A stretch of DNA of 64,000 nucleotides, from sequence record OQ790161.1; one strand, given 5' to 3'. Shown here piece by piece: positions 12,305-31,051 of the stretch (positions are counted from its first letter, which is position 1; each line of letters begins with the position of its first letter). The position numbers and the translations under genes were made by a program. The notes below the pieces were generated by a model that did not search any database, was not told the origin of the DNA, and saw only the letters and a list, made by a program, of their open reading frames with translations.

Positions 12305-13093
12305 ATGGCAAAGAACAGCAAGAAGCCCTCCCGGCGCCAACGCGAGCAGCAAGATCTGACTGCTGCTCCCACTTTCGAACCTCGCCAAAAGTCCGCCAAG
12401 ATTCGTGCGGCTGAAGCCTGGAGTCGAAAGGAAACGAAGCCGTTGACCTGTCTCAATGATGCCCAGCGCGATTACCTGCGCAGCATCGCCGAGAACCAGG
12501 TCACCCTCGGCATCGGCCCGGCGGGCACTGGCAAAACCTACGTGTCGACCAAGTACGGCGCCCAGCTGCTGGATGAGAAGAAGATCAAGCGTATCGTTGT
12601 GGTACGTCCGATCATCGAAGCCGGCGGCGGTATGGGGTTCCTGCCTGGTGATGTGGCCGAGAAGACTGCACCGTACATGGTGCCCTTCTTGGAGGTGCTC
12701 GAGGAGCACTACGGCAAGAGCCACCTGGAAGCGAAGATGAACGGCTTTGAGCCGACCATCACCTTCATTGCACCGGAGTTCATCCGTGGTCGCACGTTCA
12801 AGGACGCCCTCGTCATCCTCGACGAAGCGCAGAACATGACCTGCGATCAGATGAAGACCTTCCTGACCCGTCTGGGTGAGGACACGCGCTGCGTGATCCA
12901 GGGCGACCTGGAGCAGGTGGACATCAAGGGCAAGAGCGGCCTGCAAGATGCACTGGAAATCCTGGAAGGGATGGAAGAAGTGGGCGTGGCACTGTTCACT
13001 GAAGACGACATCGTCCGTTCGGGCTTCTGCAAGAACGTGCTGATCCGTTACCGCCAGCGCAAGACCTTCCTCGAGCAGGGCAAGGTCAAGTAA
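12305..13093 (+). CDS. phoH: PhoH family ATPase
   Basis: GPAGTGKT Walker A, RPIIE, GFLPGD, IRGRTF, ILDEAQN, TRLGE, GDLEQVD, DIVRSG. Confidence 0.95.
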   Translation: MAKNSKKPSRRQREQQDLTAAPTFEPRQKSAKIRAAEAWSRKETKPLTCLNDAQRDYLRSIAENQVTLGIGPAGTGKTYVSTKYGAQLLDEKKIKRIVVVRPIIEAGGGMGFLPGDVAEKTAPYMVPFLEVLEEHYGKSHLEAKMNGFEPTITFIAPEFIRGRTFKDALVILDEAQNMTCDQMKTFLTRLGEDTRCVIQGDLEQVDIKGKSGLQDALEILEGMEEVGVALFTEDDIVRSGFCKNVLIRYRQRKTFLEQGKVK

Positions 13094-20048: not shown

Positions 20049-20620
20049 TGTCCCATAACCCAGAGGCTCCCGAACCGTTCCAGTTTCCCAAGCCCTTCCC
20101 ACCACTGACGGACAACGTCCACAAGTTACTCGAGAAGTGTCGGCGTCGGGCCCGTGAGCTTGGAGTGGTCCAGTTCACGGGTAATGCTGATGGTCTGTTC
20201 GGCAACGAGCTGGCTGCGGCGATGATCGCCGATGGGAAGGCGGTGGCACCGGAGATCGATCCCTCCAAACGCGACCATGGGTTGATGGAGCACTACGGCA
20301 TGCACGTGGCCCAAAAGGTATTGGGTGCAGAGTGTCTGCAGCTGATCCACGATACCCTGCGTCTTAGTGGTGACAAGCTGCTGCCTTACAAAGTCACCAG
20401 CCATCCCAAGGTCAGTGCTTACTGTATGGCTGTCGCTTGGCAGATGACCAATGCCGATGTGATAACGACCAAACGCTTGCTGTCCCAGTACGGCATTCGC
20501 GCCATCATTCATCCTGAGGTGCATGGTGGCGACTTGGTCCTTGAGGTCGTATGCGAAATCGTCGATCTTTATCGTCCGGGTTTGTTGGCCAAGTTGCGTG
20601 ACGTTTTCCTGATTCCTTGA
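20048..20620 (+). CDS. Hypothetical protein
   Basis: 190-aa ORF coupled by TGATG. Confidence 0.7.
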   Translation: MSHNPEAPEPFQFPKPFPPLTDNVHKLLEKCRRRARELGVVQFTGNADGLFGNELAAAMIADGKAVAPEIDPSKRDHGLMEHYGMHVAQKVLGAECLQLIHDTLRLSGDKLLPYKVTSHPKVSAYCMAVAWQMTNADVITTKRLLSQYGIRAIIHPEVHGGDLVLEVVCEIVDLYRPGLLAKLRDVFLIP

Positions 20621-22463: not shown

Positions 22464-22543
22464 TTTTATGCCGCCAAACAGTAATTCGCTACACCGCTGT
22501 TCCATTTTCTGTCTACACGACCATCACCCAAGGATAGAGCGTA

Positions 22544-25492: not shown

Positions 25493-25526
25493 TTTTTATG
25501 CCGCCCTTTTGAGAAGAACAATAACA

Positions 25527-26351
25527 ATGACCACAATCGCATATCACGGTCCCAGTCGCACGATCTGCTCGGATTCACTCGTTACCCGTGGTGCCGGTGC
25601 AGCTAAGGTGCGCAACGAGTCTGCGGTGAAAGTGGAGTGTCTCAAGCGACTCAAGTTGCCCCGTTGCAAAGGGGAGAAGCTGTTGGCGCTGGCCTACTGT
25701 GGCACCATGCAGCGCATGGAAGATGCCACGCGCTTTATCCTGCACAACTTCAAGAGTTGGCGTGGGGCAGAGGAACTGTATCGGCGCGAAGGTCTGTCGC
25801 TGGACAACCTCAATAACGTGAGCATGTTGTTGATCACGGACAAGAAGGCATACTGCTTCAACTTCGCAAATGGCAGGTTGGAGTTTATCCCCTACGAGCT
25901 CGATGCGTATGTGACCATCGGCAGTGGCTGCACGGCCGCGATCACGGCGATGAAGGTGTACGGGGCAACTGCACGTGATGCCTTGGTGGCTGCGGCACTG
26001 ATCGACGATAGCACGGGCGTGATTGTCCACACGCACCGGATCACCAAAGATGGTCTGATCTACGACATGCCGGAAGTGATCTCAACGGGTGACCAGACCC
26101 GCATTGAACTGCGCAACAATGCGGCAGCGTCCACGGTCATGCCCAAGCTGCGCAAGCCGGCACCGGGTGAGCCCATTACCTCGATTCTGTCGGCGTGGAC
26201 TGACAACAGCGAAACGGTCAAACAAATCCGTGAAAACCTGAAGGCGCGGGATTTGCGCGACAGGAAAAAGCGTGAAACTGCCCGCAAGGAAAAGCAGGCG
26301 CAGCGGGAAGCCAAGAAGAAGAAAGAGGAAGCGTCCAAGCCGTCCGCGTGA
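25527..26351 (+). CDS. Ntn-hydrolase (HslV / proteasome beta-like) peptidase with lysine-rich tail
   Basis: N-terminal M-T-TIAY...SDS.VT (Thr1 nucleophile) and IGSGC.AA..AM...A..IDD.TG motifs. Confidence 0.75.
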   Translation: MTTIAYHGPSRTICSDSLVTRGAGAAKVRNESAVKVECLKRLKLPRCKGEKLLALAYCGTMQRMEDATRFILHNFKSWRGAEELYRREGLSLDNLNNVSMLLITDKKAYCFNFANGRLEFIPYELDAYVTIGSGCTAAITAMKVYGATARDALVAAALIDDSTGVIVHTHRITKDGLIYDMPEVISTGDQTRIELRNNAAASTVMPKLRKPAPGEPITSILSAWTDNSETVKQIRENLKARDLRDRKKRETARKEKQAQREAKKKKEEASKPSA

Positions 26352-26568
26352 AGACACTGTGTAAATTTCTCCACATGGCGCCCTATTGTATACTTCAGCG
26401 AGTGTGACGGACATATCCCCAGGGAATGACCCTTCTCGTTGGAATCTATACTGCATTTTGGGCGTCATGAACCCAGCACAGTTAGCGAACCCCCTGCTAG
26501 TCAGCACCAGGCTGCGACGCCGCGTGTCTGCATCTGGCAGGGTTCTTCCCTGCAAGAGCGTCACCCTG

Positions 26569-27198
26569 ATGTTCAATTTCAATGTCAAGACTTTCCTGAT
26601 CGTGCTTTTTGCGCTCACCCTGACTGCCTGCGCCACGATCAGCAAGCCAGCCTTCTTGCAAAAGGCTGATCCGATCCTCATCGCTTCTTCCGTTCCCGTT
26701 TTCGCACCCCTGCCGGTCAATATCGAACCGGTCGAGCTGGTCGCTGCTATCCCGGAGATCAAAGACCTTCCCATCCCTGTTGTCCCCCTGAATGAGCGCG
26801 CTCGCGTTGTGCTGAGCGAAGCTGAAATCACCTGCATGGCCAAGGCCGTGTATTTCGAAGCCCGCGGCGAAGGTACCGTAGGCATGACTGCTGTTGGCTA
26901 TGTGATCTTGAATCGCATGGCGCACCACGACTTCAAAGCCAAGACCGCCTGTGGCGTTGTCTATGAGCGCAATTCGCGCGGCTGTCAGTTTAGCTGGGTC
27001 TGTGATGGAAAGCCGGATGCGATTCGCTCCGCCCAGACCTATGAGATCGCAAGGAAAGTAGCCGTCGATGTGATGAACCGTTCTGTTGAGAACCCCATCG
27101 ACGATAGTCTGTTCTTCCGTCACCGTGCCGCAAAGGTCAAGTTCGCGTACAAGTTCCGAGCGACCATCGGCGCGCACCGTTTCTACGCCAAGATCTAG
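26569..27198 (+). CDS. SleB-like cell wall hydrolase (Hydrolase_2) with lipoprotein signal
   Basis: CMAKAVYFEARGEG..GM.AVG.VILNR, CGVVY, CQFSWVCDG, IG.HRFY; lipobox LTAC. Confidence 0.92.
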   Translation: MFNFNVKTFLIVLFALTLTACATISKPAFLQKADPILIASSVPVFAPLPVNIEPVELVAAIPEIKDLPIPVVPLNERARVVLSEAEITCMAKAVYFEARGEGTVGMTAVGYVILNRMAHHDFKAKTACGVVYERNSRGCQFSWVCDGKPDAIRSAQTYEIARKVAVDVMNRSVENPIDDSLFFRHRAAKVKFAYKFRATIGAHRFYAKI

Positions 27199-29159: not shown

Positions 29160-29205
29160 TTTTTCCCACAGCGGTTTGATGCTGTGCACAATCACCTTTC
29201 CGAGC

Positions 29206-29673
29206 ATGGCCATGGAAAACGAACAGTCCACCCCCGCACCGGCTGACAACGCGGTCAATCAGCAGTTCTTCGGTATTTCCGCTGACGGCCAGATCCTCTG
29301 GCTGCCCGAAGCGGCCTACCCCAGCGACGCACTGCGCATCTACCAGGCCAACGACGAAAAGCCGTTGCGCATTGAGATGGTGCTCGATGCCAACCAGTAC
29401 GACATCATCCGCTCGGCGGTGGATGCGGAACTCAATGACGTGGACGGCGATACGCTGATCCCCACGTACTTCGTGATCCCCTTCCACACCCAGCATGCCG
29501 TCTTCCCGCACCCTTCCGTGGACACCGAGGAAGAAGTCAAGGAATGGCTGGAAAACTGGATCGCCCAGCACAGCAGCGAAGATCGTCATGTTGCCGTACT
29601 CGGCCCGTTCAAGCTGGACGACGTCAAGGCCAATTGGCCGGTGGTCCAGGGCAGTTCCCCAGTGCAGGCGTAA
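29206..29673 (+). CDS. Acidic hypothetical protein
   Basis: 155-aa ORF, strong codon bias. Confidence 0.72.
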   Translation: MAMENEQSTPAPADNAVNQQFFGISADGQILWLPEAAYPSDALRIYQANDEKPLRIEMVLDANQYDIIRSAVDAELNDVDGDTLIPTYFVIPFHTQHAVFPHPSVDTEEEVKEWLENWIAQHSSEDRHVAVLGPFKLDDVKANWPVVQGSSPVQA

Positions 29674-29860
29674 AGCGCTGCACGCAAGGGTTAGGTTTTC
29701 TCCCCAGAAACCTAACCGGGCTTGATTCCACCACTCCCCAGTGGGAATGCCAGGTTAAGGTCATCCGGCGTCGTGAGACGAATCCGGGCGAAGGCCATTG
29801 CAAGGCGTCGTTAACCTTGCCGCGAATTCTAGAAGACCAGCCCGTCAAACGGCTGGCCTT
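29655..29860 (+). ncRNA. Candidate structured ncRNA with repeated CCCC-loop hairpins
   Basis: About 210-nt ORF-free gap filled with stems: 29689-29717, 29725-29748, 29749-29758/29811-29820 enclosing a GUGA tetraloop hairpin, and terminal hairpin 29837-29856; strand uncertain. Confidence 0.42.
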
Positions 29861-29887
29861 TATGCTGTCCACTTACAAGGAAACCCG

Positions 29888-30838
29888 ATGAAGACTGAAA
29901 GATTTCGCAGGCCTGCTCTGGAAGACGTGTTGCCCTTTGCCAAGGCCGCGGTGGATCGTAAGGAACTGCGCAGTCTGGATCTGCCGGTGGAGCGCCAATG
30001 GCTGCTGGCGCAGGCCCATCCGTTCATCCTCAAGGCGTTCGAGTATTACCTCCAGCAAACTCACCGCCGCCACAACGCCGGCGTGAGTGATGAGGGGTTG
30101 TTCTTCTCCATCGATCACGAGTACGGTGAGGTGTTCCGCCTGACCGCCCATCACACCCCGCGGGTTTTCCAGACCACAGTGGAAGGGCTGTGGATTCCTG
30201 CACAACCGGGCGTGCATGATTTCCCGCCGCAGGCCGACAGCGCGAACACCTCGTTTGCGGTGGTCATGCAGCACGCCCTGAAGCTGGTGGAGCAAAACGG
30301 CGGCGATGAGGAAGTGTCGGTCCATCATCAAGGCACCTACGTCGAATTCGTCGAGGGTCTGTACTCGACGATCACGTCGGTGTGGACCTGGAATGATTCG
30401 CAGTGGACGATCACCTACAAGCCCCCCTTCCATGTTCCCGCACCGGGCTACGAAGGCCTGCTGTCCAGCCTGAGTGATCTGTACGAGTTCAACGACAACA
30501 TCCAGCACACTCGTGGGTTGGAAGGTGTGGGCGTGGGTCGTTCGGCCTACTACTACGACTGGAGCAAAGACCAGTTGTTGTTCTGGGTACTGGAAGACAC
30601 CAACCCCAATGTCCTGCAAGCCTACGTGCAGAGTCAAAGCGATGGCGTTGCTTCCCAGTTGCGCCAGTGGGCCACAGGTGAGGACCTGCGCGCTCAGATC
30701 GCCAAGTGCCTGCTGAACCTGGACGAGACCTTCACCGTCTACCATATCCTGGACGTGCCCGATCAGGATGAAGTGGTAGTCAAGATCTTCCACATCGGCG
30801 ATACCGCCACGAGTCTTTACCTGAAGATCAAGCGTTAA
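29888..30838 (+). CDS. Hypothetical protein
   Basis: AAGGAAA RBS + ATG 29888; 316 aa. Confidence 0.75.
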   Translation: MKTERFRRPALEDVLPFAKAAVDRKELRSLDLPVERQWLLAQAHPFILKAFEYYLQQTHRRHNAGVSDEGLFFSIDHEYGEVFRLTAHHTPRVFQTTVEGLWIPAQPGVHDFPPQADSANTSFAVVMQHALKLVEQNGGDEEVSVHHQGTYVEFVEGLYSTITSVWTWNDSQWTITYKPPFHVPAPGYEGLLSSLSDLYEFNDNIQHTRGLEGVGVGRSAYYYDWSKDQLLFWVLEDTNPNVLQAYVQSQSDGVASQLRQWATGEDLRAQIAKCLLNLDETFTVYHILDVPDQDEVVVKIFHIGDTATSLYLKIKR

Positions 30839-30849
30839 GTAGTTTTTCA

Positions 30850-31025
30850 CAGTAACGTGGGATGCTGTGGAAGTACGGTGCAGAATTAGTCGTCCATGAG
30901 CGACTGATACCTCACTGCATCCTGCATGTTCTGTGCTCGCTGTGAAGCGATCCCACTACCCAGAGAACATGTCGCGACCCCACGGTCGCCACCGCGAGTG
31001 GGGCGGGAAACCGCCCCACTCTTCT
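30850..31025 (+). ncRNA. Candidate structured ncRNA / regulatory leader
   Basis: Consecutive stems 30860-69/30913-22, 30888-92/30901-05, 30925-32/30964-71, 30974-79/30984-89, then terminator 30996-31021. Confidence 0.38.
30996..31021 (+). terminator. GAAA hairpin followed by TTCTTATGC
   Basis: GAGTGGGGCGG-GAAA-CCGCCCCACTC. Confidence 0.72.
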
Positions 31026-31051
31026 TATGCCTATTACGGAATCCAATTGCC

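Follow-up and report, generated by a model that had tools for sequence, protein, structure and literature searches.

In Xanthomonas jumbo phage RTH11 (OQ790161.1, 312 kb), a gap between two protein-coding genes holds an element whose helices covary across 11 homologs while the C-rich loops on two of its hairpins stay invariant. This comparison gives solid support, at the level of sequence, for a structured RNA family selected at the RNA level. The family would be a new one of about 170–210 nt, read in RTH11 from the + strand at approximately 29655–29863. Positions refer to the window, a stretch of 64,000 nucleotides that corresponds to positions 124001–188000 of the phage record (record position = window position + 124000).

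Location and architecture of the element

The gap is 214 nt long and separates two + strand ORFs (29212–29673 and 29888–30838), and neither has an assigned function in the annotation. All genes around the gap are on the + strand. An earlier note on this DNA, made from the sequence alone, had remarked that no ORF explains the gap, and indeed no conserved ORF was found: the homologs share none inside it, small ORFs included. Neither a tRNA nor a tmRNA was found at the locus. The motif TCCCCAG occurs on the + strand at 29656, 29701, and 29735, as the note had listed, with the first copy within the end of the upstream ORF. Across the whole window TCCCCAG is not enriched (13 observed versus 10.8 expected), which leaves the local cluster as the signal. 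The parts of the locus in RTH11 are as follows.

29212–29673, + strand: upstream 153-aa ORF (WJJ55092.1, from the annotation), overlapping the RNA with its 3′ end and stop codon
29655–29662, + strand: 5′ single-stranded UUCCCCAG motif, the third C-rich site, inside the last codons of the 153-aa ORF
29662–29683, + strand: P0 hairpin with the ORF stop TAA (29671–29673) in its loop (fold and covariation)
29689–29717, + strand: P1 hairpin, loop CUCCCCAG (fold and covariation)
29725–29748, + strand: P2 hairpin, loop (A)CUCCCCAG (fold and covariation)
29757–29799, + strand: P3, a long hairpin interrupted by internal loops and capped by GUGA (GNRA) (RNAalifold and covariation)
29800–29820, + strand: P4 hairpin, GCAAGG-CGUCGUUAA-CCUUGC (RNAalifold and covariation)
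29837–29863, + strand: P5, a GC-rich hairpin and CCUUUAU, resembling a terminator at the end of the upstream transcript (terminator scan and relatives)
29859–29867, + strand: TTTATGCTG, which may serve the downstream gene as a phiKZ-type late promoter (TATG, with the G at 29864 as start)
29888–30838, + strand: downstream 316-aa ORF (WJJ55093.1), poorly conserved

The two CCCC-loop hairpins described earlier are present and conserved as P1 and P2. The 10-nt arms of P1 are 100% complementary, and one bulged U extends this stem to about 12 bp below a CCCC loop. A CGUC-GUGA-GACG hairpin, likewise described, forms the tip of P3. The 10-bp stem said to enclose it (29749–58/29811–20) has to be given up: its strands are 90% complementary in RTH11, and in the relatives 53% of cells are paired, which equals the shuffles, with no covariation. 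Since this stem is not conserved, the conserved fold of the region is P3 followed by P4 instead. The sequence GGCGTCGT appears twice, at 29767–29774 in the 5′ strand of the P3 tip and at 29804–29811 in the P4 loop, and both copies could possibly pair with GACG at 29777–29780 to give an alternative fold.

Homologs and their distribution

Besides RTH11, 10 related giant-phage genomes or contigs carry the element (11 in total), always at the syntenic site beyond the stop codon of the 153-aa ORF, and orthologs of this ORF mark the RNA locus in every relative. The closest deposited relative of RTH11 is LucasX, whose genes include several for RNA polymerase subunits and one that is tubulin-like (PMC9009655). 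Its ortholog of the upstream ORF (39% identity) is followed by a 304-nt gap that aligns by eye helix for helix with RTH11, with many compensatory changes. A third copy was found with a loop-based DNA pattern on a 310,882-bp IMG/VR contig (L014), and a search of IMG/VR with single flanking proteins gave no match. A word search based on an alignment of the 153-aa protein returned 19 homologs of it, in jumbo-phage contigs; 12 of the contigs encoding them were fetched, and the element lies directly 3′ of the ortholog in eight of the 12. The other four (L088, L089, L091, and L092) have only a hairpin and then TATGC, with TTTTATGCCG in three of the four.

Identity of the upstream protein to that of RTH11 spans 36% to 89% among the 11 homologs. 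In a tree of this protein the RNA is found on the deepest branches, with at least two to three losses, and its loss from four relatives indicates that it is dispensable. Nucleotide identity to RTH11 is higher in the gap than in the downstream gene in 10/10 relatives, and it is at least as high as in the upstream gene in 6/10. For instance, in L087 the gap is 77% identical, the upstream gene 65%, and the downstream gene 53%. The element is not repeated elsewhere in RTH11 and is found as a single copy per genome.

Pattern scans of metagenome and bacterial-genome collections returned only matches that are attributed to chance. None of them passes a check with the covariance model, which covered 80 loci (617 kb) and gave 14.6 bits at best. 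The same model rejects L071, which resembles the element by eye. The only public runs containing words from 29200–29880 yield short, DNA-like contigs nearly identical to RTH11 (phyllosphere, wastewater, and freshwater), in which a bulge and a linker bear one or two single-base insertions. Two of these runs are labelled RNA-seq and are probably DNA. In one metagenome contig the 3′ part of the RNA is unchanged and the sequence diverges past 29874.

Covariation and conserved fold

When the 11 homologs are folded singly, all 11 give the same order of helices (P0, P1, P2, P3, P4, and then the GC-rich hairpin P5), with P0 located at or just past the stop codon. RNAalifold, run on a plain MAFFT alignment that was not fitted to the structure, recovers P3, P4, and P5, with compensatory changes in 10 of 20 pairs. 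From two sequences a covariance model was made that detects LucasX with 27 bits (E about 1e-8), and the second model, from which L093 was left out, detects L093 with 26 bits. In the model-fitted alignment of 11 rows, 92.1% of cells are paired, and both sides have changed in 42 of 49 pairs (102 cells); these counts come from a structure-fitted alignment and are somewhat inflated. None of 500 shuffles reaches any of the measures, and sliding the 3′ partners leaves 28–43% paired. Folding the sequences singly and running RNAalifold on the unfitted alignment give results in line with the fitted alignment. The covariation among related phages that had been named as a check is thus present.

By helix, P0 (helix 1) is 92% paired with double changes in 4 of 5 pairs, P1 (helix 2) is 99% paired with compensatory changes in 11 of 11 pairs, and P4 (helix 9) is 100% paired with 4 of 6 pairs compensatory; P2 corresponds to helices 3–4 and P3 to helices 5–8 of the fitted alignment. 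The loops of P1 and P2 both contain CCCC in 11/11 homologs, and their stems vary. In P2 of LucasX, the fitted alignment puts a gap within the CCCC run, although CCCC is present. Most of the C-loops read UCCCCAG, and ACCCCU, UCCCCUG, and UCCCCCC are found too. An unpaired CCCC run lies 5′ of P0 or P1 in 10/11 homologs, with L093 lacking one there. Outside the C-loops, the invariant unpaired bases are AAG just 5′ of P3, GYCG in the internal loop of P3, and UCGU in the loop of P4, which reads NNUCGUNNN in the homologs. The P3 tip is GUGA in 10/11; in L093 the loop is CUUCGA.

Folding energy, another check that had been proposed, is unremarkable: relative to shuffles, RTH11 has z = −1.8 on the + strand and −2.9 on the − strand. 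Folding energy alone is weak evidence for an RNA, and the case rests on the covariation in the 11 homologs.

Several observations favor the + strand as the RNA. The fitted alignment contains 39 G-U pairs versus 17 A-C mismatches overall, and 26 versus 2 in the well-aligned helices P0, P1, P4, and P5. Reading the minus strand lowers pairing from 92% to 88%, and a U-run follows P5 only on the + strand. Together with the + orientation of the neighboring genes, these counts are the reason for taking the + strand.

The 3′ end and the probable origin of the RNA

A terminator scan detects the hairpin at 29837–29856 and then CCTTTATGC / CCTTTATGCT, the GC-rich hairpin plus U-run of an intrinsic terminator. 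The earlier note had counted a terminal hairpin and TTTATG among the parts of the RNA. The hairpin and motif are there, but they are not specific to the RNA: a hairpin equivalent to P5 is found in all relatives, including those that lack the RNA, so what ends the element is a generic module. The motif (T)TTATGCYG has 27 near-matches in the window versus 14.8 expected (0/100 shuffles reach that number), and a hairpin plus this motif is located upstream of four genes versus 0.8 expected. Weak hits of the RNA model elsewhere in three genomes are all this terminator/TATG module. A GC-rich hairpin and then (T)TTATGCCG(TC) precede genes at window positions 22465–22473, 25495–25503, 29859–29867, and about 31022–31030; the same arrangement is found at RTH11 record positions 20149–20278 on the − strand and, after the ortholog, in L088, L091, and L092.

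This arrangement looks like a joint terminator and phiKZ-type late promoter. Late promoters of phiKZ contain TATG with the transcription start at the G (PMC4666361). P5 with TTTATGCYG fits such a layout of a hairpin and then TATG, a likeness that covers only the last 30 nt of the element. In most relatives the TATG lies 24–29 nt before the next start codon. Given the recurrence of the module, its retention in the relatives without the RNA, and the TATG promoters of phiKZ, P5 and TATG most likely end the upstream transcript and start the next one at 29864.

Neither a sigma-70-like nor a TATG promoter was seen between the 153-aa ORF and P1. As in an sRNA derived from a 3′ UTR, the first helix, P0, overlaps the stop codon, and no terminator-like site was seen besides P5. 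From the lack of a visible promoter of its own and the layout of P5 and TATG, we infer that the RNA is the 3′ UTR of the mRNA of the 153-aa gene. The earlier proposal of a phage sRNA is upheld as far as a conserved, structured, non-coding element with invariant C-loops is concerned.

Comparison with known RNAs

No Rfam family matches the locus at the gathering threshold or at E ≤ 10, and none matches the nine homologous loci. The search for a known family that the note had recommended was thus negative. The family is absent from Rfam, no paper describing it was found, and it is new.

The closest analogue is sX13, an Hfq-independent sRNA of 115 nt from the Xanthomonadaceae with three stem-loops bearing CCCC or CCCCC loops (PMC3771888). 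sX13 represses mRNAs with GGGG near the start codon, and hfq and type IV pilus genes are among its targets; in Xanthomonas campestris pv. vesicatoria (Xcv), a GGGG motif is found at the ribosome site of about 5% of the genes (PMC3771888). The phage RNA resembles sX13 (RF02232) in belonging to the same host family and in having CCCC/UCCCC(U/A) loops on stem-loops plus an unpaired 5′ part. The consensus loop of sX13 in Rfam, cAUCCCCUGG, is the P1 loop of the homolog L090, and the common core is UCCCC(A/U)G. Unlike sX13, the phage RNA is phage-borne between two ORFs rather than beside or downstream of polA; it has two C-loop hairpins and one unpaired 5′ CCCC, whereas sX13 has three stem-loops with 4C/5C loops; and three further helices are without C-loops. 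The extra P3–P4 domain, a length about twice that of sX13, the 3′ UTR site, and the lack of a visible promoter of its own also set it apart. The sX13 model (gathering threshold 50 bits) has no hit at E ≤ 10 at the locus in RTH11, LucasX, and the IMG/VR phage UViG and none at E ≤ 1 on nine homologous loci, so the phage RNA is not a member of RF02232. On the three whole phage genomes the only match of this model is one of 15 bits in LucasX (MW825358.1 79837–79968, L038:1501–1632; E 0.26 per genome), which is probably due to chance and adjoins a strong terminator hairpin.

The earlier note had named RNAIII and 6C as analogues; the anatomy of C-rich loops fits, and sX13 of the host family is the closer one. 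C-rich-loop sRNAs include RNAIII/Rsa of S. aureus (UCCC loops), 6C of M. tuberculosis, and RepG/HPnc5490 of H. pylori (PMC3771888; PMC6486639), and RNAIII/Rsa, 6C, and RepG use several C-rich apical loops to pair with G-rich ribosome sites, often free of a chaperone. They differ from the phage RNA in that their sequences are unrelated to it, they are chromosomal genes with promoters of their own, and no Rfam match connects them. The 3′ UTR of S. aureus icaR contains a UCCCCUG anti-SD motif that pairs in cis with the Shine-Dalgarno sequence of its own mRNA. Both icaR and the phage RNA have UCCCC(U/A)G in a 3′ UTR; the 153-aa ORF, however, is without a G-rich ribosome site.

Conserved small RNAs of phiKZ-like giant phages have been found by ONT-cappable-seq at other loci, namely 201phi2-1 sRNA005 and the phiKZ sRNA upstream of gp182 (PMC11512511). 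These are likewise conserved, structured RNAs of nucleus-forming jumbo phages with no known function; they differ in being derived from 5′ UTRs at another locus of Pseudomonas phages, with no C-rich loops described (PMC11512511).

Possible functions of the RNA

Invariant C-loops on covarying stems are, as read from the alignment, the anatomy of C-rich-loop base-pairing sRNAs. The explanation we favor, by analogy and with a probability somewhat under one half, is a riboregulator like sX13 that is borne on a 3′ UTR and whose C-rich loops pair with G-rich ribosome sites. The RNA would be transcribed with the upstream mRNA, whose 3′ UTR it would form, and perhaps be cut free; it would reach the cytoplasm, where its C-loops would pair with GGGG or GGGGA at the ribosome-binding sites of host and/or phage mRNAs. 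Such pairing would block translation in the way that sX13 does without Hfq. P3 with its GNRA tip and P4 with its UCGU loop would form a 3′ domain that gives stability or holds a partner. The phage RNA would thus be placed among C-rich-loop riboregulators and 3′-UTR-borne RNAs, the functional part of this assignment being drawn from those analogues.

Of the 74 genes in the window, 5 have a GGGG ribosome site. The phage genes show no depletion of such sites, so there is no sign of a host-selective action. A (C/U)(A/U)GGGGA ribosome site is kept in the RTH11, UViG, and LucasX orthologs of two small genes, which are the first candidates below.

RTH11 record position 148295 (window 24295), + strand: gene of 85 aa, conserved (C/U)(A/U)GGGGA
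RTH11 record position 218794, − strand: gene of 158 aa, conserved (C/U)(A/U)GGGGA

About ten more genes, among them a PhoH-family gene at window position 12305, keep a GGGG-type site in RTH11 and UViG. The genes with conserved sites are candidate targets of the C-loops and show that such targets are available. Duplex predictions in the window make no target stand out, and no cis pairing of the C-loops with the ribosome site of the upstream gene was found.

The P3–P4 domain and the invariant unpaired bases exceed what a simple seed-bearing sRNA needs, which hints at a protein partner or a tertiary fold. An RNA that binds protein is accordingly one alternative, to which we give a minor share of the probability: the C-loops and P3–P4 would be recognized by a phage or host protein (e.g. 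a KH/S1/cold-shock-type or other binder), and the RNA as a whole would serve as a scaffold, a sponge, or an autoregulatory site of the upstream mRNA, roles covered by that same minor share. The invariant AAG, GYCG, and UCGU outside the C-loops, the fixed linkage to one ORF, and the retention of the GNRA tip in nearly all homologs point this way. The linked 153-aa protein, however, is without a known RNA-binding fold or family. Neither flanking protein has a Pfam family, a PHROG family, or an Atlas lead, and the confident AF2 model of the 153-aa protein (alpha/beta, pLDDT 87) has no relative in the PDB (Foldseek E ≥ 1, VIA Z ≤ 4.5); lacking both a family and a PDB relative, the predicted protein seems to be of no help in explaining the RNA. 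Moreover, no binder of C-rich loops is known in the system, and the CCCC loops of sX13, in the same host family, work by base pairing (PMC3771888).

Of similarly low probability is a cis-acting 3′-UTR element that steers its own transcript, through termination or read-through at P5, protection from exonucleases, processing, or export from the phage nucleus; its termination variant, within the same overall estimate, would be a put-like antitermination of the phage RNA polymerase. The element is located exactly between stop codon and terminator, and in 6 of 11 homologs (RTH11 29662–29683, L082, L084, L087, L010, and L090) the loop of P0 contains the stop codon, so that a terminating ribosome would open P0 and translation could remodel the fold. 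LucasX has been grouped with the nucleus-forming chimalliviruses (bioRxiv 10.1101/2024.03.21.585822), and the mRNAs of LucasX must exit the phage nucleus. The relatives without the RNA retain the terminator, a fact that also tells against the cis role, since P5 alone would suffice for stability and termination there. In addition, a signal of general use in termination or export would be expected to recur, but the element is single-copy, and a cis role leaves the invariant CCCC loops unexplained.

The preferred riboregulator could take a stronger form, which we consider improbable: the phage RNA would mimic sX13 and take over the host sX13 regulon (hfq, type IV pilus, and other GGGG-site mRNAs) in infection. 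If so, abundant UCCCC loops could, for example, shut down pili and thereby block superinfection, or they could alter host translation while acting outside the phage nucleus, with P3–P4 as a phage-specific add-on.

A minus-strand RNA is very improbable. The earlier note had seen in the opposite strand a resemblance to GGA-loop protein sponges, and CUGGGGAG loops with GGA motifs would in that case sponge RsmA/CsrA. Hairpins can form on either strand, with a better z-score for the minus one, whose GGGGA loops contain GGA. We know of no Rsm-type sponge described for Xanthomonas, a point that was counted for the sponge. The sponge is disfavored by the excess of G-U pairs over A-C mismatches on the + strand and by the + orientation of the surrounding genes; on the minus strand the hairpin is not followed by a U-run and a promoter-like site was not detected, and no CsrB/Rsm family of Rfam matches the locus or the nine homologous loci. 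That the element has no function of its own and consists of leftover terminators, repeat elements, or DNA-level hairpins is scarcely credible: its folding energy is near that of shuffles and four relatives have lost it, but most of its pairs show compensatory changes, its loops are invariant, its conservation exceeds that of the neighboring gene over deep divergence, and it is single-copy, not a repeat.

Significance

To our knowledge, the mode of action is known for very few of the regulatory RNAs that phages encode. Among the reported regulatory RNAs of nucleus-forming jumbo phages found in the literature, none has a known function. The comparative support for the RNA described here is clear, which makes it ready for RNA family databases now. 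Pairing of the C-loops with G-rich ribosome sites is a concrete idea that can be tested cheaply, as sX13 reporters exist in Xanthomonas, and the relatives that keep only the terminator are natural deletion variants and serve as built-in controls. If the RNA is sX13-like, a virus would have copied the seed of a host global regulator of pili, Hfq, and virulence genes in crop pathogens, which would be relevant to phage biocontrol of Xanthomonas.

Other sequences near the locus

Upstream of the 153-aa ORF, TTTGANNCTGTGC was considered as a repeated promoter motif and rejected because it is not repeated. The sequence TTTGAYNCTGTGCMA at 29175–29187, about 35 nt 5′ of the 153-aa start, is kept in distant relatives (L086, L090, L091, and L092) and does not recur as a motif in the window. 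Another gap in the window, at 26351–26569 (218 nt) before a cell-wall hydrolase gene, has CACTATTGTATAC in common with LucasX (L010:3992–4170), and it may represent a second class of promoter. This gap additionally carries ATCCCCAGGG at 26414.
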